Shown piece by piece: positions 26,633-62,567 of a DNA stretch of 64,000 nucleotides. Made by a program: the position numbers and the translations under genes. The notes under the pieces are model-generated. The model ran no database searches, was not told the origin of the DNA, and saw nothing but the letters and a program-made list of their open reading frames with translations. The stretch lies in the IMG/VR virus record IMGVR_UViG_3300042261_002385, positions 372,001 to 436,000 of that record; one strand, 5' to 3'. Positions within the stretch are counted from its first letter, which is position 1. The number at the start of each line of letters is the position of its first letter.

Positions 26633-27286
26633 ATGTTAACAACCATCTTTATTATCTTAAACATTGTTTTATTAGAAATTGTTCTAAGCATTGACAATGC
26701 GGCTGTCTTATCAACTATGGTAGGACAACTTCCAAAATCTGAACAAAAAAAGGCACTGACTTGGGGAATCTTTGGAGCTTATATCTTTAGAGGTTTGGCA
26801 CTTCTTTTTGCGACCATTTTAATTAAGTTGACTTGGTTAAAAGTAGTCGGTGGTCTTTACTTAGTATATTTAGGAATTAAATCACTAAGTCTCCAATCAG
26901 ATAGTAAAGAAAAACACCCAGTCAAATTACCGTTCTTAAATACATTTTGGTCAACTGTCGTTATGGTCGAATTTATGGATATTATTTTTAGCATTGACAA
27001 TATATTTTCAGCAGTCGCATTTACCAACAACTTCTGGGTAATTTGTTTAGGGGTTTTTATAGGCATTTTAGCTATTCGTTTTGCTACAACTAAAATGATT
27101 GAGTTAGTGAAAAAAATACCAGTTATTGAAAAAATAGCTTTTGTAGTAATCGGTGTGTTAGGTATAAAATTAGTCTTATCTTCTTTCTTTCCTGAATTAA
27201 CATCTGAACTAGTTGACTTAGTTTTTTCACTTGGAACACTAGTCGCTTTTTTGACACCGGTTTTAATTAACAAGCTCAGTAAATAG
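26633..27286 (+). CDS. TerC/Alx family membrane protein
   Basis: LEIVLSIDNAAVL, GIFGAYIFRG, DIIFSIDNIFSAVA. Confidence 0.9.
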   Translation: MLTTIFIILNIVLLEIVLSIDNAAVLSTMVGQLPKSEQKKALTWGIFGAYIFRGLALLFATILIKLTWLKVVGGLYLVYLGIKSLSLQSDSKEKHPVKLPFLNTFWSTVVMVEFMDIIFSIDNIFSAVAFTNNFWVICLGVFIGILAIRFATTKMIELVKKIPVIEKIAFVVIGVLGIKLVLSSFFPELTSELVDLVFSLGTLVAFLTPVLINKLSK

Positions 27287-27310: not shown

Positions 27311-27601
27311 ATGAAATTAAAACATTTACAAGACTTTGCGCAAACAAGATTTGGAGGAGCTGAAAAAATAGCTAACACGGCTAAAGACAAAGGTGGACTA
27401 GCACTATTGACCTGGAGACACTTTAAAGTTAAACTTCCTTACTATAAAAAGGCTGCTGAGGGTGAACTGGATTTAGAACAAGCAAAAAAAGAGTTTGATA
27501 AAACCCTAAAGTCAATTAATCTAAACATGACTCAAACTGAGTTTCAAACTGAAGTAGGTAGACTTGAAGTCTTAGGTGAGTTACTTATTAAAAACTCTTA
27601 G
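27311..27601 (+). CDS. Hypothetical protein with tag-like N-terminus (MKLKHLQDF)
   Basis: AATATATA 27299. Confidence 0.65.
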   Translation: MKLKHLQDFAQTRFGGAEKIANTAKDKGGLALLTWRHFKVKLPYYKKAAEGELDLEQAKKEFDKTLKSINLNMTQTEFQTEVGRLEVLGELLIKNS

Positions 27602-28371
27602 ATAGTTACTCTTTGAGAATTTATTTTCTGACCAATTAATTGTAACGATTCTCTATCAAATTCATCACTACTACCGGTTGTAAAATACTTACACGTTCCA
27701 CCTAAACTTGGTTCTATTCCTAAAGCGGAAATATAATCAACTATAATATCATCCTGAGAAATAATCTTAATATCTGGATATAATTCCTTGATGATATCTT
27801 TTAAAATGATGTAGTGTGTGCATGCTAATAAAATTGTGTCAATATCATTGTTTAAGTTAAACAATTCAGATAAATCCGACTTAATTATCTCTAAACCTTC
27901 AGATGTATTGAATTCACCAGTTTCAACCAACTGAGCCCAATTTGGACAACTTAAAGCCGTAACTCTGTCTAAAGACTTTTGATAAACACCCAAATGTATT
28001 GTTTTAGACGTTCCTAACACACCTAAATGATCATACTTGACTCTCTTTACCCAATCAATTGTTGGTGTGATTATATCAATTGTATTTGATGAATAGGTAG
28101 ATAACGAACAAGCTGTATTACAAGCTACAATGTTTGTTTTACATCCTGACTGATTCAAAAAATCTAAACCACGAGTGGTTAGTGATACAATTTCTTGAGA
28201 ATCAAGTTCTCCATATGGTGCTGTAAGATTGTCACCTAAGAAAACAAAGTCATAGTCTGGAAACTTTTTACGAAGTGTCGTCAATATAAAAAGACCACCA
28301 TATCCAGAATCAAAAACACCGATAGGATTATAAGATGAGTTAAACTCAAGATATAATTTTAACCACTTCAT
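27598..28371 (-). CDS. murI: Glutamate racemase with N-terminal tag extension
   Basis: PIGVFDSGYGG, APYG, VACNTA and LACTHY catalytic cysteines; extra MKWLKLYLEFN. Confidence 0.9.
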   Translation of the reverse strand: MKWLKLYLEFNSSYNPIGVFDSGYGGLFILTTLRKKFPDYDFVFLGDNLTAPYGELDSQEIVSLTTRGLDFLNQSGCKTNIVACNTACSLSTYSSNTIDIITPTIDWVKRVKYDHLGVLGTSKTIHLGVYQKSLDRVTALSCPNWAQLVETGEFNTSEGLEIIKSDLSELFNLNNDIDTILLACTHYIILKDIIKELYPDIKIISQDDIIVDYISALGIEPSLGGTCKYFTTGSSDEFDRESLQLIGQKINSQRVTI

Positions 28372-28703
28372 ATATTTTGGTCCTGTAGATATCTTTCAAC
28401 TTGAGTTTTAAAAACTTCAAAATCAGAAGGAATAGTTTTGAATTTAGACTGCCTTATGAAAATTTCTTGATTTCCATTTTTTTCTAAACTATAACCAAGA
28501 TGTGTTTTTTTAATTATCTCACCTGTCGGTAGTTGTGCTGTCGACTCGTCTATAAACTCACCACCGATATTGGAAATAAACATTACTTCTGAATTTGAAA
28601 AATCATTTGGATCATACTCTTTAGTTTGACCATGACTTCTCATCACGGTTCTTAAATCATTTAGACCCTCCTTAATATAATCTTTATATCTTTTAACTTT
28701 CAT
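28368..28703 (-). CDS. N-tagged hypothetical protein (MKVKRYKDYIKE)
   Basis: ORF track. Confidence 0.65.
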   Translation of the reverse strand: MKVKRYKDYIKEGLNDLRTVMRSHGQTKEYDPNDFSNSEVMFISNIGGEFIDESTAQLPTGEIIKKTHLGYSLEKNGNQEIFIRQSKFKTIPSDFEVFKTQVERYLQDQNI

Positions 28704-29806
28704 TACGCTCTAGTAATTGCAAATTGTTGTATTGAATCAAGTCCCCAATCACCTCCCCAGTTGGTTGTTCCACATGATGTAGTGGTTGAACCAGCTGGTG
28801 TGAGTTGTTTATATCCTAACAATTCGTCAAGTGAATAAAGAACATACTCTGCTGAATAAACATCTTCTGATCCAACGACAGCAACTATCCAAGCTGAGTC
28901 ATTAAGTAAGAAACTACCTTCTTTATAGTAGGCTATAACGCTTGTAGGATGTGTGACTCCATCTGGAATAGAAATTGGATAAAATAAGTTTTCTTCTAAT
29001 TGGTTAAAAGCAAACCAACTTAATGGTGTTTGGTAATAAATGAATTGATTATTTGAGTGTGTTGCTGCGTAACTAGCTGCTGATAAAGGTGTCAACGTTT
29101 GTGCTCCAGAACCGTAAGCCTCAAATGTTATACCTGTTATTAGTCCACAAGCTGGAGGAGCAGAACCAGTCGTTACACTTGCAGTAAATGAAAATATTTG
29201 TTTGTCAAGATTCATAACACGATCGAGATATAAAGTATATGTGGTTGAATAACTAGCATTTGATGAAAAATTTATAGTAGCATCAGTAACTTTTAAGTCA
29301 TCATACGTAATTTCAGTTGCTGGAATAATATCACCTGTATCATCTTTAACTAAACGAGCATATCTTGGTAACAAAGAAACTGAGATTACTGGTGCATCAA
29401 AGGTTACAGTCAAAGTATTTAAGTCTACAAATTCAGGGGTGATACCATTGGTAGTAGATATTTCAGTGGGTCTAAAACTTTCTCTAGACTTTTGTAATTG
29501 AGCAGCTACAGTAGGAGCTCCAGAAACAAACGGTGGAAAAACTCTATGTTTCTTTTGGTCATAAGTATTTGTTTCATCCCAACCTAAATCACCATTTGGT
29601 TCTTTTTCAACATCTACATAGAAAGTTTCATCAATTCTATCCCAGCAGAGACTTATGTAAGTAATTTCTTTTTCATCTTCTATAATAATTCTACCTCTTG
29701 AATCGATTTGCCTTTCAAGACCAGAACCTTTTAAAGCTGCACTCCAAGCCACTTGACCAACAATTGAAAGTAAATTTACGACTCGGTTAGTATCATCTAT
29801 AGCCAT
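28703..29806 (-). CDS. Putative virion protein, paralog of 29845-31332
   Basis: Shared WDRIDE, PTVAAQLQK, EAYGSGxQ, YVLYSLD, NWGG, IQQF. Confidence 0.6.
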   Translation of the reverse strand: MAIDDTNRVVNLLSIVGQVAWSAALKGSGLERQIDSRGRIIIEDEKEITYISLCWDRIDETFYVDVEKEPNGDLGWDETNTYDQKKHRVFPPFVSGAPTVAAQLQKSRESFRPTEISTTNGITPEFVDLNTLTVTFDAPVISVSLLPRYARLVKDDTGDIIPATEITYDDLKVTDATINFSSNASYSTTYTLYLDRVMNLDKQIFSFTASVTTGSAPPACGLITGITFEAYGSGAQTLTPLSAASYAATHSNNQFIYYQTPLSWFAFNQLEENLFYPISIPDGVTHPTSVIAYYKEGSFLLNDSAWIVAVVGSEDVYSAEYVLYSLDELLGYKQLTPAGSTTTSCGTTNWGGDWGLDSIQQFAITRA

Positions 29807-29844
29807 ATCACATTTTTTTCTTTTATATATTAATTCTCAAAAAC

Positions 29845-31332
29845 CTAAACTCTATTAATTCTGAATTGCTGAATAGTATCTATCCAATTACCACCCCAAT
29901 TAATTGTTCCACACAAATAAGTAGACGAACCAGCTGGACTTAATTGATATGTTTCACCAATTATGTCTAAAGAATAAAGCACGTATTCATAAGAACTATT
30001 ATAGTCTAATTCAGAGCCTATAATTCCCACAATCCACGGTGCGTCTTCAAGCAAGTAAGCTCCGTTTTTATAATAAACATAAACAGTCGTTGGTATAGTA
30101 ACGCTAGCCGGAACTAAAACAGTAGAATCTAATTTAGTTAAAAATTCAGTCCAATTCAATCCTTCTTGATAATAAATAAATTTATTATCAGTATTGGTGA
30201 GAAAAGACCATTCTGACTCTGACACTGGATAAATCAATTGCTCACCTGATCCATAAGCTTCTATGAAAATACTACTAATTTCAGGACAAGCTCTTGGGGC
30301 ATCTATTGTTGTTGCTGAAACTTCATGAGATGTTGACTCTTTTGCCAAATTGAACACACCATCTATAGTAATCACGTGTGTTGTGCCATATTCTGCCGGA
30401 GGCTCAATAGTTAAATAAACATCGTTTGTTTTATCTTCGTCAGAGTTAATTTCTGTAACTGTAAGATTGTATGAAATTTCAGGTCCCGATGCAGTCACAT
30501 CATCAATAGTAAAAATTGCTTCACTATCACCACCCGAAACTCTAATCTGATCACCGACACGATATCCAGAACCACCAGAAACTATAGTTGCTGACTCAAC
30601 TGCGCCTCCATCAACACTTTCTATTAAAAAAATTGAATTTCCATTACCTCTATCAATTACTAATGTTTCTCCTGCTTGATAGCCTGTTCCCGCTGATATA
30701 ATTGTTGCTGATGTTAATCTGCCTCCTTCATGGGTCATTTCTAATGTTAGACCAGAACCACCAGGTGATCCAGTCACACTGCCTGTAAATGGATTTGTAA
30801 AACCACCTAATCCATCACCAGCAACAAATATACTACCACTTAGAACACGAGTTGGAGTAGCCGATACTAAGACTTGAGCAGAAGTTCCAACATCACTTAA
30901 TACATTGTATGTAGTTGATATATAACCTGAACCAGAAGTTAGAAGACTTATACTATTGATATAACCGTTAGCAAGTCCAGTGATAGAAATACTATCTGTT
31001 GATAGTAATGATGAGTAGATTTTATTTTTAAAATTTAAGTTTAGAGTTTGGAGATTTGAAAACTCTGCCGTAACGTCATTTCCTGTTGGAAGTGAAGTAG
31101 CTACATATCCTACTTTTTGTTTTTGTAACTGGGCAGCCACAGTAGGCGCTCCTTCTTCAAAAGATGGAAAAATCTTATAAGTTTTTTTATTAGAATCATC
31201 TTGAACATAAAGTGCTTCATCTATTCTATCCCATATTATTGAAATCATAGCATCTTCAGATTTTGTAGTAAAAATTACAATTTTTCTATTCTCTGAAGTT
31301 ATTTGACCCGCTCTTACTTCTCTATCAAACAT
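29845..31332 (-). CDS. Putative virion/fibre protein with G-S/T-G-Y repeats
   Basis: SGSGY, AGTGY, GGSGY repeats inserted into the scaffold shared with 28703-29806. Confidence 0.6.
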   Translation of the reverse strand: MFDREVRAGQITSENRKIVIFTTKSEDAMISIIWDRIDEALYVQDDSNKKTYKIFPSFEEGAPTVAAQLQKQKVGYVATSLPTGNDVTAEFSNLQTLNLNFKNKIYSSLLSTDSISITGLANGYINSISLLTSGSGYISTTYNVLSDVGTSAQVLVSATPTRVLSGSIFVAGDGLGGFTNPFTGSVTGSPGGSGLTLEMTHEGGRLTSATIISAGTGYQAGETLVIDRGNGNSIFLIESVDGGAVESATIVSGGSGYRVGDQIRVSGGDSEAIFTIDDVTASGPEISYNLTVTEINSDEDKTNDVYLTIEPPAEYGTTHVITIDGVFNLAKESTSHEVSATTIDAPRACPEISSIFIEAYGSGEQLIYPVSESEWSFLTNTDNKFIYYQEGLNWTEFLTKLDSTVLVPASVTIPTTVYVYYKNGAYLLEDAPWIVGIIGSELDYNSSYEYVLYSLDIIGETYQLSPAGSSTYLCGTINWGGNWIDTIQQFRINRV

Positions 31333-31383
31333 TTGGTGGTTTAAAATTTTATTTATATATTAATATTATAATATATATTAAAA

Positions 31384-31951: not shown

Positions 31952-32317
31952 TTATTTAGACTGTTGTAATCTTTTAGTCTTTTCTTTTGACCTTTCACAT
32001 TTTACTTTAATATAATCATGAGCTCTTTTAAGTCGTTTTTTAACTTCAGGATCTTTCGAGGTTCTTACAGCAACTCTTAATCTTTGTTCTATCAAATTTA
32101 TAATCTGAGATTGACGCTTATGTGACTTACTCTTAAAACTTTGACTATTCAATGTCTTTCTGACATCTTCTAAAGTTCTAAACTTTACTGATACTGTATC
32201 ATCAGGATTTTCGTCAGTGTATAACCTACGAGAGGAACCTTTAGGCTTTTTTCCAGTTCCTACTAAAGGGTCTTTTTCTTCTGAGATAAATTGACCAAAG
32301 CTTTCTAAATGTATCAT
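31952..32317 (-). CDS. N-tagged basic protein (MIHLESFGQFISE)
   Basis: GTGKKPKGSSRRLYTDENP module; AATATATA (-) 32323-32330. Confidence 0.7.
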   Translation of the reverse strand: MIHLESFGQFISEEKDPLVGTGKKPKGSSRRLYTDENPDDTVSVKFRTLEDVRKTLNSQSFKSKSHKRQSQIINLIEQRLRVAVRTSKDPEVKKRLKRAHDYIKVKCERSKEKTKRLQQSK

Positions 32318-32334
32318 TAGATTATATATTATAT

Positions 32335-33339: not shown

Positions 33340-33349
33340 AGATTATATA

Positions 33350-34075
33350 TTATTTATATAATGTAGTATCTATCGTTTGTAGAATAAAATCACACACCAA
33401 TATATGTCCTCGAGCAGTCGGATGTATTCCATCTGATGTCATACTTTGTAGATCATAAGGCTCAATAAATTGACATTCGGTTAAATCTGATTTTAATTTC
33501 AGCTGTAGGTTTTTTCTTTTTTCAACATATGGAATCCAATCTGACCTTTTACTTAATAGATTTGCTGGTCTTCCGACAGGAAGAATGTTAATATCCATAA
33601 ACTTACCTTCAATCTTCCAACCTAAGTTAACCCAAACATCACAACCATGTGAGTTGGATATGTCAATCATTTTCTGAAAATTAGAAATAGTTGTCTCCAA
33701 AGGTATTGACATATTTGAAGCATCATTTCCACCACCATATAAGATAACACGGTCCCAATTTTTACCAGTCTTAAACATCGATTCTAATTTTTCTAACATC
33801 CATTTTGAAGTCTTACCACCAGAAGCTCCAACATCAACAGTGACACCATATGGTGATAACTTTTGTGATAAGTGATTAGGCCAAGTCCAAGTTATCTTTT
33901 GTCCAGAATTAGTTGTAACAGCACTTTGTGAATCACCTATAATAAGAATAGACATCGGTGGTTTAATAGTATCAGTTACAACCTGACTGTTTGTTTTGAT
34001 AAAACTAATTTGTTTCTCATCTCTTAAAACTCCAGAAAACAAAAAAGATAAAATTAAAATTCCAAGCAATCTCAT
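33350..34075 (-). CDS. Secreted SGNH/GDSL hydrolase
   Basis: Signal peptide; IGDSQS, GGNDA, DGIHPT. Confidence 0.85.
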   Translation of the reverse strand: MRLLGILILSFLFSGVLRDEKQISFIKTNSQVVTDTIKPPMSILIIGDSQSAVTTNSGQKITWTWPNHLSQKLSPYGVTVDVGASGGKTSKWMLEKLESMFKTGKNWDRVILYGGGNDASNMSIPLETTISNFQKMIDISNSHGCDVWVNLGWKIEGKFMDINILPVGRPANLLSKRSDWIPYVEKRKNLQLKLKSDLTECQFIEPYDLQSMTSDGIHPTARGHILVCDFILQTIDTTLYK

Positions 34076-34164
34076 ACGTTATATATTATAATTTTTATAA
34101 AAACAAAGTTATAAACAAATCAATTTTTATATCGTATAACCGTGATATAAAATATTTACTTATT

Positions 34165-40133: not shown

Positions 40134-40553
40134 ATGAAAAGAATTAAATCATTCATTTTGTTTGAGACATTTGATGAACAAGATGACGTCTATCAAATTA
40201 CCACTACTGTAAAAGAAATGTTATTAGAGTTAGACTTCTTAGATATTGAAAAAAGAGTTGATATTGTTAAAAATCATTCTAAATTACAAATTGATGAATC
40301 CCCTGAGATTATTGTAATTAATCTATGGAAGAAGGCAATTAAAAAAGAAGACTATGGATTTAGAGCTTCTTATCATTGGAATGATGTTAAAGATGTTATA
40401 GTGCCAGTTATTGATTATTTAGAAGCGGAAGGATTTACTTGGCAAATGGATAGGGGAACGCTTGCTTATAATGGAGTTCCTATTATATCTACATCAGGTA
40501 GTCAGCAATTCGATACTGTTAGGAGTAAAGTAGAAATGTGGTTTATAAGATGA
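40134..40553 (+). CDS. N-tagged paralog-family protein (MKRIKSFILFE)
   Basis: Close paralog of 51612. Confidence 0.72.
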   Translation: MKRIKSFILFETFDEQDDVYQITTTVKEMLLELDFLDIEKRVDIVKNHSKLQIDESPEIIVINLWKKAIKKEDYGFRASYHWNDVKDVIVPVIDYLEAEGFTWQMDRGTLAYNGVPIISTSGSQQFDTVRSKVEMWFIR

Positions 40554-40969
40554 GAAAGATTAAGTCATTTAAGTTATTTGAAAGTGATTATCTACCACTA
40601 AATTTTGATTATACACAGTATGATGAAGACCATAAATTCATTTCAGATACACTTTTAGATTTAGAAGACATAGGATATAAAATCAAAATCTCACCAGATG
40701 GAATTTCTAGTCATATAGGAATTAATGAAGAAATGCCATTCTTTATAATTGATAATAAAAAATACTTTAAATTTTCTGATGTTAAAGAACAACTTCTTCA
40801 AATTAAATCTTACTTAGATGATAGATGGTTTAAGTGTGGTGTTCTTTTTGAAGGTGATCCTAAAAGACTAGAAGTTTATATAGATGAAAAAGATTATGAC
40901 TATTTAGATGATTGGTTTCAAACATCAACTACAGCAATCGTAAATTTAGCAGTCTATTTTAATATATAG
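40550..40969 (+). CDS. N-tagged paralog-family protein (MRKIKSFKLFE)
   Basis: ISDTLLDLEDIG motif. Confidence 0.72.
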   Translation: MRKIKSFKLFESDYLPLNFDYTQYDEDHKFISDTLLDLEDIGYKIKISPDGISSHIGINEEMPFFIIDNKKYFKFSDVKEQLLQIKSYLDDRWFKCGVLFEGDPKRLEVYIDEKDYDYLDDWFQTSTTAIVNLAVYFNI

Positions 40970-40972
40970 TTA

Positions 40973-41452
40973 GTGAAACATTTAAAATCATATAAAGTAT
41001 TTGAAAATTCGGGTTCTGGAAATGCCCAATTTGATTGGTTGAGAAAACAAAATAATGAAAGATTTTTTAAGTTAGCAGATATACTTTATTCTGAAGTTTT
41101 TGATGAGTATGATGTTATCGAAAAAAAAGATGAAAGTTTTGATGGCCAAGCCGATCCTACTCACAAATTCTGGGGATTCAATTTATTAAACGGAGGTTTT
41201 GTAAAAAATAAAAGTGAAATCTCAGACACTGATTCTATTAAATCAATTTTCGTTTACAATATACCAGAACACGAAGAAAGTGAATTTTATGAATTGTTAA
41301 AAAGTTTAGATGAAAGAGTTTTTGATTATTGTGAAAAACATTTAGTCGTTACTCAAGAATCATATGTCAATGATTATGTTTACTTTGACTTTATAATATC
41401 TTTCGGAGATGAAACTGCTTTTTATAACGAGTTAGGCGCACCACTTACTTGA
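40973..41452 (+). CDS. N-tagged hypothetical protein (MKHLKSYKVFE)
   Basis: AATATATA 40961; GTG start. Confidence 0.7.
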   Translation: MKHLKSYKVFENSGSGNAQFDWLRKQNNERFFKLADILYSEVFDEYDVIEKKDESFDGQADPTHKFWGFNLLNGGFVKNKSEISDTDSIKSIFVYNIPEHEESEFYELLKSLDERVFDYCEKHLVVTQESYVNDYVYFDFIISFGDETAFYNELGAPLT

Positions 41453-41467
41453 AAACTTGAATAAACT

Positions 41468-41944
41468 ATGAAAAGAATAAAGACATTTAAACTATTTGAA
41501 TCAGTATCCGAACAAATTATAAGAGACATACTCTTAGATCTAACTGATGATAGTAATTTCAATGTTAATATCAAAAAGGTAGATTATCATTTAGAAGTTG
41601 TTATAACGAGGGGTTCTTATTTAGATTCAAGAAAAACAAGAGAGATTCCAGGAGCACCTGAAGCACCAGGTGGATATCCAAATAATTTATTTTTATGGTT
41701 TGAAATCAAAGATGTTATTATAAGATTATGTGAGTATGTTTATTCAGAAACTGAATTAAAACCAATTGAGAATAGACATTTTCAACAATGGTATTTACAG
41801 GCAGAACATTTTTCAAAATCACCATTTAGAATGAAAAATCTTGGTATTGGAAGTGAGTTTGGTATAGGATGGCACAAAGCAGAAGATTTTACTTTAGGTG
41901 ATTTTATTTCTTTTACTGGATTAAAATTAATAATTAAATTGTGA
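41468..41944 (+). CDS. N-tagged paralog-family protein (MKRIKTFKLFE)
   Basis: IRDILLDLTDD motif. Confidence 0.7.
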   Translation: MKRIKTFKLFESVSEQIIRDILLDLTDDSNFNVNIKKVDYHLEVVITRGSYLDSRKTREIPGAPEAPGGYPNNLFLWFEIKDVIIRLCEYVYSETELKPIENRHFQQWYLQAEHFSKSPFRMKNLGIGSEFGIGWHKAEDFTLGDFISFTGLKLIIKL

Positions 41945-42213
41945 GAAGAATAAAGACATACAAATTATTTGAATCTGTTCAAAACTGGATAGAGATTAAT
42001 GATAAACTTTGTAGAGATTTCGAGTTTTCTGATTTCAATGAAGCTTTACAATTCATTAATAAAATATCAGATATTTGTGAATCAGAAAATCATCATCCCG
42101 AAATCAATTGGACTTATAATAAGATAACTCTAAAGTTATCAACACACGATGCAGGAGATATTATCACTGATAAAGATTTCAGATTAGCTAAATTAATAGA
42201 TGATTTAGTATAG
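41941..42213 (+). CDS. phhB: Pterin-4-alpha-carbinolamine dehydratase with N-terminal tag
   Basis: FSDFNEALQF, ENHHPE, LSTHDAG, ITDKDFRLA; extra MRRIKTYKLFES. Confidence 0.88.
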   Translation: MRRIKTYKLFESVQNWIEINDKLCRDFEFSDFNEALQFINKISDICESENHHPEINWTYNKITLKLSTHDAGDIITDKDFRLAKLIDDLV

Positions 42214-59256: not shown

Positions 59257-60906
59257 TTAAATTTTAGTTACGAGATTTTCTACAATTTGGAGACCTCTTA
59301 TTATTTTTGAATAATAATCATTTACTCTCCAATTTCTCAAATATTGACAAGCTCTTTCACCAGTATCTTGACCTAAATAATCTATGAAATTTGATAAATT
59401 ATCTAAACCGTAAGTGCTATTAGAAAAGAAGTTTGATAGACTTATCATTTTTTGACGAGCTATTTCTAAATCTTCTATGGTATTAAATTCACCAGACATT
59501 AGTCTTGTATAGAACTTTTGACTTATTCTTTCTAAACTTTCAACAATTGGTAAATATTTGTTTTCAGTTTCTTCACTGTCGGATTTTAGAATTTTTTTAA
59601 CAGTTTCTAAATTTTTAGTGATTCTAGTAGTTCTTTCAGCTGCTCTTTTGTAAAGGTCTTTGATTCTATTATTAATTTGATTAATGCAGTATTCTTTATT
59701 ACTTTCGTCTTCAGTAGACATCATATCATAATAAAGTTCTGATATTGATCCAAAATAGTTTTGATATCTTGAAGCTGATTCTAAGACAAACATTGACCAT
59801 CTACCACCAACTCCTCTAGATACTAAATTTTTGATATTAGACACATCGCCTATGATGTCAGCTTTAAGTGCAATTTGAGTAAGATATCTTTCAATATTTT
59901 GTTTTCTAACATCATCATCACTAACTACTAATCTGCTGCCAGATTTAAGTTCTTCTCTTTCATCTTTTATTTCACTTCTACGTTGATACTCACCCGACTT
60001 TAATTTATTTAAGTCTAACACTAAGGCAAAATGAGCATCTTTTATAGTAGATTCTACATTTGTTCCAGTATATGATTTAAAGTATTGGTTTAGTCCAACA
60101 TTCCACTCGTAAGGATCTACGGCATCTTTATCATCATCATCATCACCTTCTTCTTTTTCTTTAAGAACACAAATTCTGTTAAAATCTCCACCAGATACAT
60201 TCCAAGAGTATCTTCCATAACTTCTCCAAGCACTACCATTTGGTGATCCACCGTCGAACCTGTCTTGAATACAGAATACTTCTCCACCACTTTGAAAAAT
60301 CGTTGCAATTACATCTGGATCTCTATCATGTGCTGCAATTGTAACTTTTGTCAAGTGTGGTAGACTACGGAGAGTTCTTACTCCATTTGAATCAGGTAAC
60401 AGGGTAGATACTACTTTATATTTTTGCAAAGATTTTGATTTAGATGCTACGCTTCTAAGAACTCCATCAACTCCAGTTTGTGTGATGAATTTACCATCTG
60501 ATGAAAACCAGAATTTAATTATTTTTACCTCTGGTTGTTGTGGTTCTTTTCCAGATCCATCACAATGGGGACAATCAACGATTCTAGTTCTTTGACCCCA
60601 CATACGTGCTAATTTACCTGATTTACAAACCTCACCTTCAACACCGTGTTGTCTGAATGCGGTTTTAGAAGTCATTTTACAAGGTTCATCTTTAGGTTCA
60701 AATTTAACATTTAGTGCCTTTTTGAAAGGTAAGTATTCAAACATATCATCTGAAAACTGAGATAGTGGAAAATCGTAACTGCGAGCTAATTTTTCGAGTG
60801 TATTAATGAATCTTTGTTTAGATTCAGAATTTATATATCCTAAAATTTTAGTTAATTTAACTGATTCAAATGCTTCGAAAAGTTTGAGATATTTTAATTG
60901 TCTCAT
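59257..60906 (-). CDS. Large N-tagged hypothetical protein (MRQLKYLKLFEAFE)
   Basis: Zn-ribbon-like CPHCDGSG; helical C-half. Confidence 0.75.
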   Translation of the reverse strand: MRQLKYLKLFEAFESVKLTKILGYINSESKQRFINTLEKLARSYDFPLSQFSDDMFEYLPFKKALNVKFEPKDEPCKMTSKTAFRQHGVEGEVCKSGKLARMWGQRTRIVDCPHCDGSGKEPQQPEVKIIKFWFSSDGKFITQTGVDGVLRSVASKSKSLQKYKVVSTLLPDSNGVRTLRSLPHLTKVTIAAHDRDPDVIATIFQSGGEVFCIQDRFDGGSPNGSAWRSYGRYSWNVSGGDFNRICVLKEKEEGDDDDDKDAVDPYEWNVGLNQYFKSYTGTNVESTIKDAHFALVLDLNKLKSGEYQRRSEIKDEREELKSGSRLVVSDDDVRKQNIERYLTQIALKADIIGDVSNIKNLVSRGVGGRWSMFVLESASRYQNYFGSISELYYDMMSTEDESNKEYCINQINNRIKDLYKRAAERTTRITKNLETVKKILKSDSEETENKYLPIVESLERISQKFYTRLMSGEFNTIEDLEIARQKMISLSNFFSNSTYGLDNLSNFIDYLGQDTGERACQYLRNWRVNDYYSKIIRGLQIVENLVTKI

Positions 60907-62567
60907 ATTTGTGGACCTACGATTTCTACTTTTATTCCGCTTCTTCTTAGTTCGGATACATATTCTTTAGTTTGCTTGTCAACTATAAGGTCACCAGAAA
61001 TTACTAATTTTTTTACTTTTAAGTTACTGAAACCTTCTTTCATATCAGCTAATGTATCTAATGTATAAAGTATTTGTAATTCTTCCAATTCAGTGAATAT
61101 AGAAAGATCAATATCTCCTGTCATATCACAACTTAATATCTGAAGTTTCTTAATATTTGGATTTACTGAAACAATTTCTTCGAATATCTTAGAGTCAAAT
61201 TTACATTTATCAAATGCGATAGAGTCTGTTTTTACGTTGCTAAATCCTGACAATGTTTTTATTTTCAATGATTTGAATTTAATCCATTCTAAGTCAAGTG
61301 GAATTTGAGTCAAATTCTCTGGAATATCTGTAGTCTCAATTACTAGTTGTTTGATTTTTGCTTTTGGTGATATTTTTATCTTACTCCAGTCATAAACTGC
61401 ACTTAAGTAAAGTGATTTAGTATTTTTTCCAATAAACTGAGCTTGGTCAAGTCTCATTCTATCCATATAAGGAGCTCTAATTGAATCTTCAGGATCAATA
61501 TCCGGTGTGAATAAATATCTAGAAGAACTTGGGCTTGTGTTTTCAACGTTGCTTGAATATTTTGTTACAAGCTCGTCAAATATATCTTTCATCCTATCTG
61601 GATAAGCTCTGTCAAAGTAAATCTTTGCTTCACTTTGGTCATCAAATGATTCGATATTTCTAATCATCATTCTTGAAAGTGGTAGTTTATCTGATATTTT
61701 TTCATCATTCCAGAAAATCGGAGTATCAAATACAAAGAAAGCTGGAATTGAATTCGGATCGAAAACGTTTCCTAATAGTTGTTCTCTGTAGCCACCTGTG
61801 TATAAATGTTGACAAGAACTATAGAATTTTGAAATAGACATGTTCAAAATATCACTCGGATTGTGGTCAATCTGAAGATATATATCTCTTCCAAAGATTG
61901 CATATTCATATCTGTAGTCACTGTTGTGATTTTCTTTAGCTAAATTTCTTAATTGACTAATATCTCTTGATGAGAAAATAGTTGTAGAGACTCTATCATC
62001 TGGATAACATCTATTGTAGTCATCAACAAAGCTATTGATATTAATTAAGTTCGTTGAGAAAACAGGATCACCTGCATTCTTTTTAACACGAATCATATTT
62101 CCTTCTTCATCTCTAATTGGTCTACCATTCTCATCTTTTTGAATTCTTTCTGAAGCTTGAGTTTCTCTAATTTCTAATTTTCTAAATACCGGCTCATAGA
62201 TAAAAACTATTTGATCTACAGTTGGTGCTTGGATATTAAAATTATCCATAACCATTTTACTAGCATCGGTTAGAAGCTCTAAATTTATAGACTCTTGAAG
62301 AACATGATTGAATTTATCTGGAATACTTGTAAATGAATTCATAATATTTTCCATATTACAATCAAAAAAATAAGATAAAACTTTAAGTTTATCTTCTTCT
62401 TCAAGTTTCCATCTACCTTGTTTAATCTTATCGGTCGGATCTACTTCTTCATAATCTAAGTATTTCTCACCCCATTGTTGAGCAACAGCTTTTGCTTGTT
62501 TTGGTAAGATAATATCTTTGATTCTGGCTTCGTTTAACCATTGTTCTCTAGTTTTAATCCACTTCAT
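60903..62567 (-). CDS. Large N-tagged protein with LRR-like C-terminus (MKWIKTREQWLNE)
   Basis: IKQLVI, IKKLQI, LEELQI, VKKLVI repeats; AATATATA (-) 62572. Confidence 0.72.
   Translation of the reverse strand: MKWIKTREQWLNEARIKDIILPKQAKAVAQQWGEKYLDYEEVDPTDKIKQGRWKLEEEDKLKVLSYFFDCNMENIMNSFTSIPDKFNHVLQESINLELLTDASKMVMDNFNIQAPTVDQIVFIYEPVFRKLEIRETQASERIQKDENGRPIRDEEGNMIRVKKNAGDPVFSTNLININSFVDDYNRCYPDDRVSTTIFSSRDISQLRNLAKENHNSDYRYEYAIFGRDIYLQIDHNPSDILNMSISKFYSSCQHLYTGGYREQLLGNVFDPNSIPAFFVFDTPIFWNDEKISDKLPLSRMMIRNIESFDDQSEAKIYFDRAYPDRMKDIFDELVTKYSSNVENTSPSSSRYLFTPDIDPEDSIRAPYMDRMRLDQAQFIGKNTKSLYLSAVYDWSKIKISPKAKIKQLVIETTDIPENLTQIPLDLEWIKFKSLKIKTLSGFSNVKTDSIAFDKCKFDSKIFEEIVSVNPNIKKLQILSCDMTGDIDLSIFTELEELQILYTLDTLADMKEGFSNLKVKKLVISGDLIVDKQTKEYVSELRRSGIKVEIVGPQI

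Follow-up and report, generated by a model that had tools for sequence, protein, structure and literature searches.

The capsid-targeting sequence (CTS) of phage T4 internal proteins IPI-IPIII and Alt is a short N-terminal leader of about 10-19 residues carried by otherwise unrelated proteins (Mullaney and Black 1996; reviewed in PMC9026906, PMC3012670). Mutagenesis found the residues at positions 4 and 7, hydrophobic or aromatic, to be critical for targeting, and the leader ends in a site for the prohead protease, L/I-X-E (PMC9026906). Giant phiKZ-like phages (201phi2-1, phiKZ, SPN3US) also load tens of different proteins into the head, with propeptides removed after Glu by a gp21-related protease; these propeptides, however, are 80-160 residues long, lack a shared short N-terminal motif and end at S/A/G-X-E sites (PMC5694885), and the phages belong to a different lineage, i.e., the nucleus-forming Chimalliviridae rather than the Bacteroidota-infecting Mahaphage clade. 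Glutamate racemase (MurI) supplies D-Glu for peptidoglycan in bacteria, and MurI of E. coli, B. subtilis (YrpC), M. tuberculosis and M. smegmatis is in addition an endogenous inhibitor of DNA gyrase (PMC10886550, PMC1635304). Here, we report that a freshwater huge phage of the Mahaphage clade carries an intact MurI gene whose product begins with a leader resembling the T4 CTS; that the leader directs capsid loading in this phage is a hypothesis by analogy.

The window, i.e., the whole 64,000-nucleotide stretch of the 436-kb record that was analysed, contains the following features.

27598..28371 (-), glutamate racemase (MurI) coding sequence, 257 aa, with N-terminal leader
28327..28371 (-), leader, residues 1-15, MKWLKLYLEFNSSYN, with the motif core at residues 1-10
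28120..28122 (-), catalytic Cys84, in VACNTA
27820..27822 (-), catalytic Cys184, in LACTHY
28368..28703 (-), upstream 111-aa ORF with a T4-CTS-like class B leader, MKVKRYKDYIKEG, whose stop overlaps the MurI start (ATGA); no family match was found
28703..29806 (-), 367-aa protein of stacked Ig-like beta-sandwich domains, same cluster
29824..29832 (-), TAATATATA promoter-like motif, the nearest one upstream of MurI on its strand
29845..31332 (-), 495-aa paralogue of the 367-aa protein (46% identity over 210 aa), first gene of the cluster
31354..31380 (-), two TAATATATA promoter-like motifs heading the cluster
31952..32317 (-), 121-aa ORF with class B leader MIHLESFGQFISEE
41941..42213 (+), pterin-4a-carbinolamine dehydratase (PCD) with leader MRRIKTYKLFES, a second captured enzyme with the tag
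40134..42213 (+), tandem array of five tagged small genes (MKRIKSFILFE, MRKIKSFKLFES, MKHLKSYKVFEN, MKRIKTFKLFES, MRRIKTYKLFES)

The earlier note had described an intact racemase preceded by an N-terminal tag, without stating the strand, and this observation is confirmed. Profile searches identified the protein as a MurI homologue (NCBIfam PRK00865, 1.8e-36; TIGR00067, 1.9e-35), with PDB MurI 2jfu matched at 6e-32. The AF2 model (pLDDT 93.9, pTM 0.90) has the predicted two-domain alpha/beta MurI fold; the top 48 Foldseek PDB hits are all glutamate racemases, with a best TM of 0.87 to 2gzm. Residues D21-S22-G23, G46-D47-N48-x-x-A-P52-Y53-G54, C84-N-T, E150 and C184-T-H are all present, and both cysteines are invariant in a 69-sequence alignment. 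The protein nevertheless scores below the curated family cut-offs (TIGR00067, 122.5 bits against 146.65; PRK00865.1-3, 126 against 328; PF01177 Asp_Glu_race, 27.4 against 31), i.e., it is a divergent, shortened member that lacks three segments of about 13, 6 and 7 residues relative to cellular MurI. Its nearest cellular relatives are Bacteroidota MurI (Flavobacteriales, Crocinitomicaceae, Fluviicola and Chitinophagaceae) at 36-41% identity, sharing the DSGYGG variant and the GDNxxAPYG, ACNTA and ACTHY motifs, and the tagged phage sequences fall on one side of a single tree branch with SH-aLRT 99. MurI is absent from the five complete Mahaphage reference genomes, so it is an accessory gene of a sub-lineage.

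The leader MKWLKLYLEFNSSYN is placed before PIG, where cellular homologues have about 5 residues. Alignment with cellular homologues had been proposed as a check on whether the extension is phage-specific: of 102 cellular-type sequences, 59 have 5 residues there and none matches the strict motif, whereas all 17 phage-clade sequences carry 13-22 residues before PIG with a hydrophobic residue near position 4 and aromatics near 7 and 10 (weakest in the homologues P0006 and P0017). The leader was retained across the whole MurI phage clade down to 43% identity. The model predicts a short helix at residues 2-10, although the mean pLDDT for residues 1-10 is only 50. It does not resemble a Sec, Tat or lipoprotein signal peptide, which would have a hydrophobic h-region of about 10-15 residues after a basic n-region; the motif M-K-x-L-K-x-F-E-x-F is instead followed by polar or acidic residues, and true signal peptides in the same window look different, e.g., MKNLILTLILSFVSTILFSQ.

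The leader is genome-wide. In the record, 49 of 528 ORFs begin with M-[KR]-x-[LIV]-K-x-[FY]-x-x-F (class A) against 0.19 in shuffles, about 300 times the internal rate; the ORF counts come from our own simple greedy ORF caller and are approximate. A second form, [FY]xx[FY][ILV]xE at residues 4-7 (class B), is found in 19 ORFs against 0.4 expected, and adds a further 18 carriers, giving 67 tagged proteins, about one in eight. The T4 CTS, MKTYQEFIAE, is an instance of class B, and on the T4 genome this pattern picks IPII, IPIII and one hypothetical ORF among 264, although it also has T4 look-alikes not known to be packaged, gp61.1 and the UvsW C-terminal ORF. Position 4 is L, I, V or M and position 7 is F or Y in 47 of the 49 class A tags (L4 and Y7 in MurI), and a Glu follows at 8-12 in 47 of 49. 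The dominant form here (M-K-x-L-K-x-F-E-x-F, or ...KLFES) is not the T4 sequence, however, and matches no T4 ORF. Twenty-six of 49 tags have [LI]xE within the first 16 residues; the MurI leader reads K-L-Y-L-E-F, with Y at P3 rather than L or I, so the canonical L/I-X-E site is absent, and it is one of 8 of 49 class A tags without an aromatic-Glu pair. MurI homologues such as P0008 read L-Y-E.

Codon usage at tag positions equals genome-wide synonymous usage, indicating that selection acts on the peptide, and a DNA-level explanation of the motif was rejected on this basis. Six natural SNPs in MurI are all synonymous, including one at tag codon 4. The 49 class A carriers fall into 46 BLAST families, which rejects a paralogous-family explanation, and the tagged domains include Pterin_4a, a cyanophycin-synthase N domain, CPT and several DUFs. 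The tag is modular, as the earlier note had inferred: PCD shows the same tagged-phage versus untagged-short pattern, two unrelated genes in a related phage (L026) share a near-identical 62-nt leader that stops being similar right after KLFE, and a 90%-identity MurI cluster has three different leaders. Tagged genes also cluster, with 12 adjacent pairs against 4.5 expected. As with the T4 CTS, genes carrying the leader sit in variable arrays and leaders are exchanged between genes.

The phage has a T4-type head module, with a gp23-family MCP (95 bits) and a gp20-type portal lying near an S77-like, gp21-type protease in the same head-gene region. The protease (PF03420, 1.5e-5; phrog_207, 1.3e-30) is part of a 699-aa protease-scaffold fusion with about 12 repeats carrying [IL]-A-E, the T4 gp21 cleavage motif (PMC9026906). 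The nearest isolate, Tenacibaculum phage pT24, has the protease-scaffold fusion but 0 of 286 tagged ORFs, and is therefore uninformative as a cultured relative. Tag density varied too much by region, in the stretches compared across genomes, for co-variation of tag form with scaffold repeat to be judged. A hydrophobic-moment calculation gave a 3-residue periodicity that differs from T4 and was not informative.

The interpretation offered in the earlier note, a captured host enzyme converted to virion cargo by adding a packaging-like tag, is partly supported. The capture of a Bacteroidota-type MurI, the phage-specific extension and the modularity of the tag are supported, whereas a packaging role of the tag and MurI as virion cargo are hypotheses, the packaging reading resting on analogy with the T4 CTS plus a T4-type head module. 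We consider that the gene was acquired from a Bacteroidota host by a lineage of freshwater huge phages, was trimmed by three short deletions and, judged from sequence and model, very probably remains catalytically competent, its first roughly 10-15 residues being a copy of a portable leader that this lineage attaches to many unrelated proteins. In the reading we favor, tentatively, since we hold it at slightly less than even likelihood, the leader would bind the scaffolding core of the prohead so that the protein is enclosed when the gp23-type shell closes; the S77-type protease may then clip it after a glutamate, and the protein would be delivered into the next cell with the DNA. What the analysis itself establishes is the intact MurI fold (as modelled) and active-site residues, the phage-specific leader with its genome-wide occurrence, amino-acid-level selection and modular exchange, and the T4-type head module with a Glu-site-rich scaffold, whereas racemase activity, binding to the core, cleavage, presence in virions and what MurI does after injection or in the cytoplasm (D-Glu supply, or a moonlighting activity such as gyrase binding) are inferred.

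Several findings weigh against capsid targeting, for which there is no direct evidence of packaging, cleavage or expression (the only RNA-labelled runs hold next to nothing of the locus, and no transcript ends could be read). The missing L/I-X-E site in MurI is one; the promoter-like motif ahead of the cluster, which is not late-specific, and the class B look-alikes in T4 are others. Sixty-seven tagged proteins in this record (about 13% of ORFs rather than about 2%), and 31 of 166 ORFs in the first 80 kb of LR756502, are far more than the handful of CTS proteins in T4. Tagged proteins are mostly acidic, unlike the basic T4 internal proteins, and the tagged enzymes (MurI, PCD and a cytidylyltransferase-like protein) look like cytoplasmic metabolic enzymes. 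It is thus possible, though we consider it less likely than capsid targeting, that the leader is a protein-level sorting or regulatory signal not meant for the capsid: a degron read by the phage's own AAA+ (Lon-like) protease to time protein lifetimes, a handle for a phage chaperone, or an address for an intracellular phage structure, in which case MurI would work in the infected cytoplasm as an auxiliary metabolic enzyme keeping D-glutamate, and hence peptidoglycan synthesis, going during a long infection. The phage indeed encodes an ATP-dependent protease (phrog_4871, 1.2e-250), the MurI active site is fully conserved and under purifying selection, and there is no Mur-ligase or TupA-type ATP-grasp gene in the record, so D-Glu would feed the host pathway. 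However, no such N-terminal signal is known in phages; Hsp70, present in three large relatives, is absent from this record; and the key positions and trailing Glu match the T4 CTS in a phage that has the T4-type core and protease such a signal needs.

Two further readings seem unlikely. The leader might have no role of its own in the mature protein's biology, persisting as a by-product of a cassette boundary, a conserved 5' gene end with its translation start at which recombination inserts and shuffles newly captured genes; the shared 62-nt leader, the swapped MurI leaders and the tandem arrays fit this, and recombination at conserved CTS and promoter sequences was proposed for T-even ip loci (Repoila et al. 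1994, cited in PMC12373910). Yet median nucleotide identity between leaders is only 23 of 42, so together with the codon usage it is the peptide and not the DNA that is conserved, the peptide pattern has been kept across the diverged MurI homologues, and recombination at leaders is compatible with, and expected under, a functional tag. Alternatively, the phage MurI may be kept for a non-racemase activity, e.g., binding and inhibiting host gyrase, with the tag delivering it at the moment of infection. Two tagged sub-clades have lost substrate-binding motifs while keeping the fold, both cysteines and the leader (DSG to DLG with PYG to KTA in one, GDNxxAPYG to GVSPN... in the other), and gyrase inhibition by MurI, correctly cited in the earlier note as established, crosses species; this offers a possible rationale for a phage to deliver MurI early. 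But the window's own protein keeps every catalytic and substrate motif, and no sequence determinant of gyrase binding is known; for this protein the idea is by analogy with cellular MurI. A gene-calling artefact, with only the general risk of over-extended ORF calls in its favor, is practically excluded: there is no ATG, GTG or TTG between codon 1 and PIGVFDSG, the ATG overlaps the upstream stop as ATGA, and the motif is conserved in all 17 homologues with synonymous change.

If the capsid reading holds, huge phages of the Mahaphage clade would use a short, portable T4-like leader to load dozens of different proteins into the capsid, more than 60 in this genome and perhaps more in 640-kb relatives if the density in that one 80-kb stretch holds, including captured host enzymes such as MurI and PCD. 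Infection would then begin with the injection of a large pre-made proteome, and any captured gene could become cargo simply by recombination at a roughly 30-60-nt leader. We regard this wider picture as tentative, again short of even likelihood. It would give a sequence-only way to read the injected proteome of uncultured huge phages, would help explain what part of their extra coding capacity is for, and could supply a compact tag for loading foreign proteins into large capsids. Even if the leader has another role, a single 10-residue signal on about 13% of a phage's proteins is a directly testable organising principle for which we found no description in the literature searched. We also found no report there of a MurI gene in a bona fide phage; matches in the phage collection, taken without their genomic context, are unannotated metagenomic or short 'phage' records and two Salmonella genome contigs.

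The earlier note had also placed MurI in a late-type operon with virion-like genes, which is only partly confirmed. MurI is the fourth gene of a co-oriented, tightly packed cluster behind the two Ig-like paralogues (atlas searches with the 495-aa protein gave weak leads only), and it lies near structural-protein-like and tail-fibre-like ORFs. The TAATATATA motif heading the cluster also precedes the portal and protease genes, but it precedes ribonucleotide reductase (RNR) as well, so it cannot be called late-specific, and scans for sigma-70-type promoters and terminators were at or below chance. A homologue of the nearby 121-aa class B ORF is fused to the C-terminus of MurI in P0010.

The window belongs to a 436,265-bp IMG/VR virus record (bases 372001-436000; about 30% G+C), and the record is probably incomplete because the same MurI protein also occurs on a 522-kb contig. 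The major capsid protein (MCP) is 70% identical to those of the 634-kb and 642-kb genomes LR745206 and LR756502, 50-51% identical to those of the 735-kb and 636-kb genomes, and 29% identical to Lak phages. These belong to the "Mahaphage" clade of Al-Shayeb et al. 2020, whose largest members are predicted to infect Bacteroidetes (PMC7162821). Near-identical DNA occurs in many freshwater and lake metagenomes. The gene of interest and its surroundings in the window are as follows.

26633-27286, plus strand: TerC-family integral membrane protein (PF03741, 1.4e-49), next to the MurI cluster on the opposite strand, probably another host-derived accessory gene
27598-28371, minus strand: glutamate racemase homologue (MurI), 257 aa
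28368-28703, minus strand: ORF immediately upstream of MurI, with a leader of the second form, MKVKRYKDYIKEG
28703-29806 and 29845-31332, minus strand: two large paralogous proteins, 46% identical over the C-terminal 210 aa
31952-32317, minus strand: 121-aa ORF with a leader of the second form, MIHLESFGQFISEE
29824-29832, 31354-31380, 32323-32331, 33344-33352 and 34080-34088, minus strand: promoter-like motif TAATATATA

The ATG of MurI overlaps the stop of the upstream ORF as ATGA, and no alternative start codon lies before the conserved PIGVFDSG. In two metagenomes (runs X4 and X9, one labelled freshwater and one "fungus metagenome"), a TA insertion at window 28373 ends the upstream ORF one codon earlier, which removes the stop/start overlap but leaves the MurI start intact. 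The observation in the earlier note, a MurI preceded by an N-terminal tag, holds.

The protein matches glutamate racemase models at E 1e-35 to 1e-36, though it falls below the curated cut-offs, and it matches solved MurI structures at up to 6e-32. An AlphaFold2 model built on 69 homologues has a mean pLDDT of 93.9; its 48 best PDB matches are all glutamate racemases, with a best TM of 0.87. Both catalytic cysteines are present (C84 in ACNTA and C184 in ACTHY), and so are the D21-S22-G, G-D-N-x-x-A-P52-Y-G and E150 motifs. Its nearest cellular relatives are Flavobacteriales, Crocinitomicaceae, Fluviicola and Chitinophagaceae MurI at 36-41% identity, which share the DSGYGG variant; compared with them, the phage protein lacks three short segments of about 13, 6 and 7 residues. 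Six natural SNPs seen in two freshwater metagenomes are all synonymous. We conclude that this is a divergent, shortened MurI that is very probably active, activity being inferred from sequence and the predicted structure.

The 17 closest homologues (43-99% identity) come from metagenomic contigs with phage-like gene content, including one of 816 kb. All carry 13-22 residues before PIG, of the same kind as the leader in the window, e.g., MKHLKLFLEFNQEY, MKYLKLYEDFSQNS and MKWLKTYETFRPLNY, although two of these homologues (P0006 and P0017) fit least well. Among 102 cellular-type homologues, 59 have 5 residues before PIG and none has the motif, indicating that the extension is phage-specific. In a maximum-likelihood tree the tagged and untagged sequences are separated by a single branch with SH-aLRT 99; as the tree has no outgroup, its root and the direction of transfer are inferred. 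In the metagenomic homologue P0010, MurI is fused in frame to a homologue of the 121-aa ORF at window 31952-32317, with the leader of the second gene read through, which points to gene fusion or loss of a stop in a relative.

The leader is not restricted to MurI. With a simple ORF caller, 49 of 528 ORFs in the record begin M-[KR]-x-[LIVM]-[K..]-x-[FY..]-x-x-[FYW], whereas shuffling gives 0.19 and the internal rate is 3e-4 per position. The consensus is M-K-[YH]-[LI]-K-x-[FY]-[EK]-x-F, with a sub-form ending ...KLFES, and an aromatic-Glu pair follows within residues 7-12 in 41 of 49 tags, against 26 of 479 other ORFs. Synonymous codon usage at the conserved positions equals the genome average (for example, Lys2 is AAA 83% versus 83%, and Phe10 is TTT 73% versus 75%); the peptide is therefore what is selected, not the DNA. 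After the first 14 residues are removed, the 49 proteins fall into 46 BLAST families, and their Pfam domains are diverse: Pterin_4a, a cyanophycin-synthase N domain, CPT, MurI and several DUFs. The leader is common in LR756502 (31 of 166 ORFs in its first 80 kb), rarer or variant in LR756500 and LR756504, and absent from the cultured Tenacibaculum phage pT24.

The pterin dehydratase at window 41941-42213 repeats the MurI pattern: about 95 phage-type homologues carry leader variants directly in front of the domain, whereas short forms of 76-79 aa begin at the domain itself. In a related phage contig (L026), the dehydratase gene and an unrelated 275-aa gene share a near-identical 62-nt leader (L026:4644-4705 and L026:9712-9773), and similarity stops immediately after the codons for ...KLFE. 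Within one 90%-identity MurI cluster, three different leaders occur.

The closest known system is the capsid-targeting sequence (CTS) of phage T4. T4 IPII and IPIII begin MKTYQEFIAE; mutagenesis placed targeting at residues 4 and 7 and processing at residues 8 and 10, with cleavage by gp21 after L/I-X-E (PMC9026906). The present genome has a second leader form, [FY]xx[FY][ILV]xE starting at residues 4-7, which occurs in 19 ORFs against 0.4 expected, i.e., the two in the MurI neighbourhood and 17 others, and the T4 sequence itself satisfies this pattern. Applied to the T4 genome, the pattern returns only IPII, IPIII and the hypothetical gp61.1 among 264 ORFs. The latter, a 54-aa protein (AF158101, 18966-19130), begins MKTFKEFIKED, a close look-alike of the T4 CTS, and a looser scan also hits an ORF inside uvsW, so look-alikes exist. 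Together, the two leader forms mark 67 of 528 ORFs.

The phage has a T4-type head module comprising a gp23-family MCP (95 bits), a portal, and an S77-like prohead protease fused to a scaffold. The fusion lies outside the window, at 269288-271387 of the record on the minus strand (locus L020:9291-11387), and its scaffold contains about 12 tandem 14-residue repeats YSEY[IL]AENLDKNI[AS], each carrying an [IL]-A-E site; the repeat core Y-x-E-[FY]-I-A-E is nearly the T4 CTS core YQEFIAE. The same architecture is present in four related huge-phage genomes (LR756501, LR756502, LR756504 and LR756500) and in pT24, although the repeats are degenerate in LR756500 and for pT24 the statement concerns the fusion alone.

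The peptide-level conservation, the N-terminal position, the key positions, the trailing Glu, the modular exchange and the presence of the partner machinery all fit a capsid-targeting propeptide, and this is the reading we tentatively prefer, although we hold it at somewhat less than even likelihood. Several points count against it: the carriers are many and acidic (median pI 5.4), they include metabolic-looking enzymes, and the MurI leader reads L-Y-L-E with no canonical site. In the absence of virion or expression data, targeting remains a hypothesis. Another protein-level signal is possible and only somewhat less likely, while a recombination by-product seems unlikely. The interpretation in the earlier note, a captured host enzyme turned into virion cargo by a modular tag, is partly supported: the phage-specific leader, its genome-wide occurrence, its selection as a peptide and its modularity are shown by our analysis, as are the intact active-site residues and the T4-type head module, whereas racemase activity, capsid targeting and the direction of gene transfer are inferred.

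The earlier note also placed MurI in a late-type operon with virion-like genes. The cluster is headed by the TAATATATA motif, which has 208 copies in the record and lies within 70 nt upstream of 128 genes, peaking at -13..-15 and -30..-35. It precedes the portal and protease genes, but the same motif stands before ribonucleotide reductase, so "late" is not established. The two large proteins ahead of MurI are lineage-restricted, with only 12 relatives found among 1.84 billion representative proteins; the model shows stacked Ig-like beta-sandwiches, with S-layer-like domain matches of low overall TM. ORFs further upstream have weak matches to virion structural and tail-fibre families. This is compatible with a structural neighbourhood but is not proof of one.

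As for what MurI would do, the record has no Mur ligase or TupA-type ATP-grasp gene, so any D-Glu made would feed the host pathway. Two tagged sub-clades have lost substrate motifs while keeping the fold, the cysteines and the leader, which hints that some lineages keep the protein for something other than racemisation. Gyrase inhibition is documented for four cellular MurI proteins (PMC10886550, PMC1635304) and could be considered here by analogy alone.

In the literature searched, we found no report of this leader or of MurI in a bona fide phage; MurI matches in the phage collection, taken without regard to their genomic context, are unannotated metagenomic or short "phage" records and two Salmonella genome contigs. 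Compared with the T4 CTS, the leader described here occurs on a much larger scale and has a different consensus. Its carriers also include two large proteins of 549 and 541 aa (MRQLKYLKLFEAFE and MRYLKFYEAFKSKG), which are paralogues in distant parts of the genome, at window 59257-60906 (minus strand) and at 77294-78919 of the record; the ORF adjacent to the first (554 aa, window 60903-62567, minus strand) starts MKWIKTREQW.
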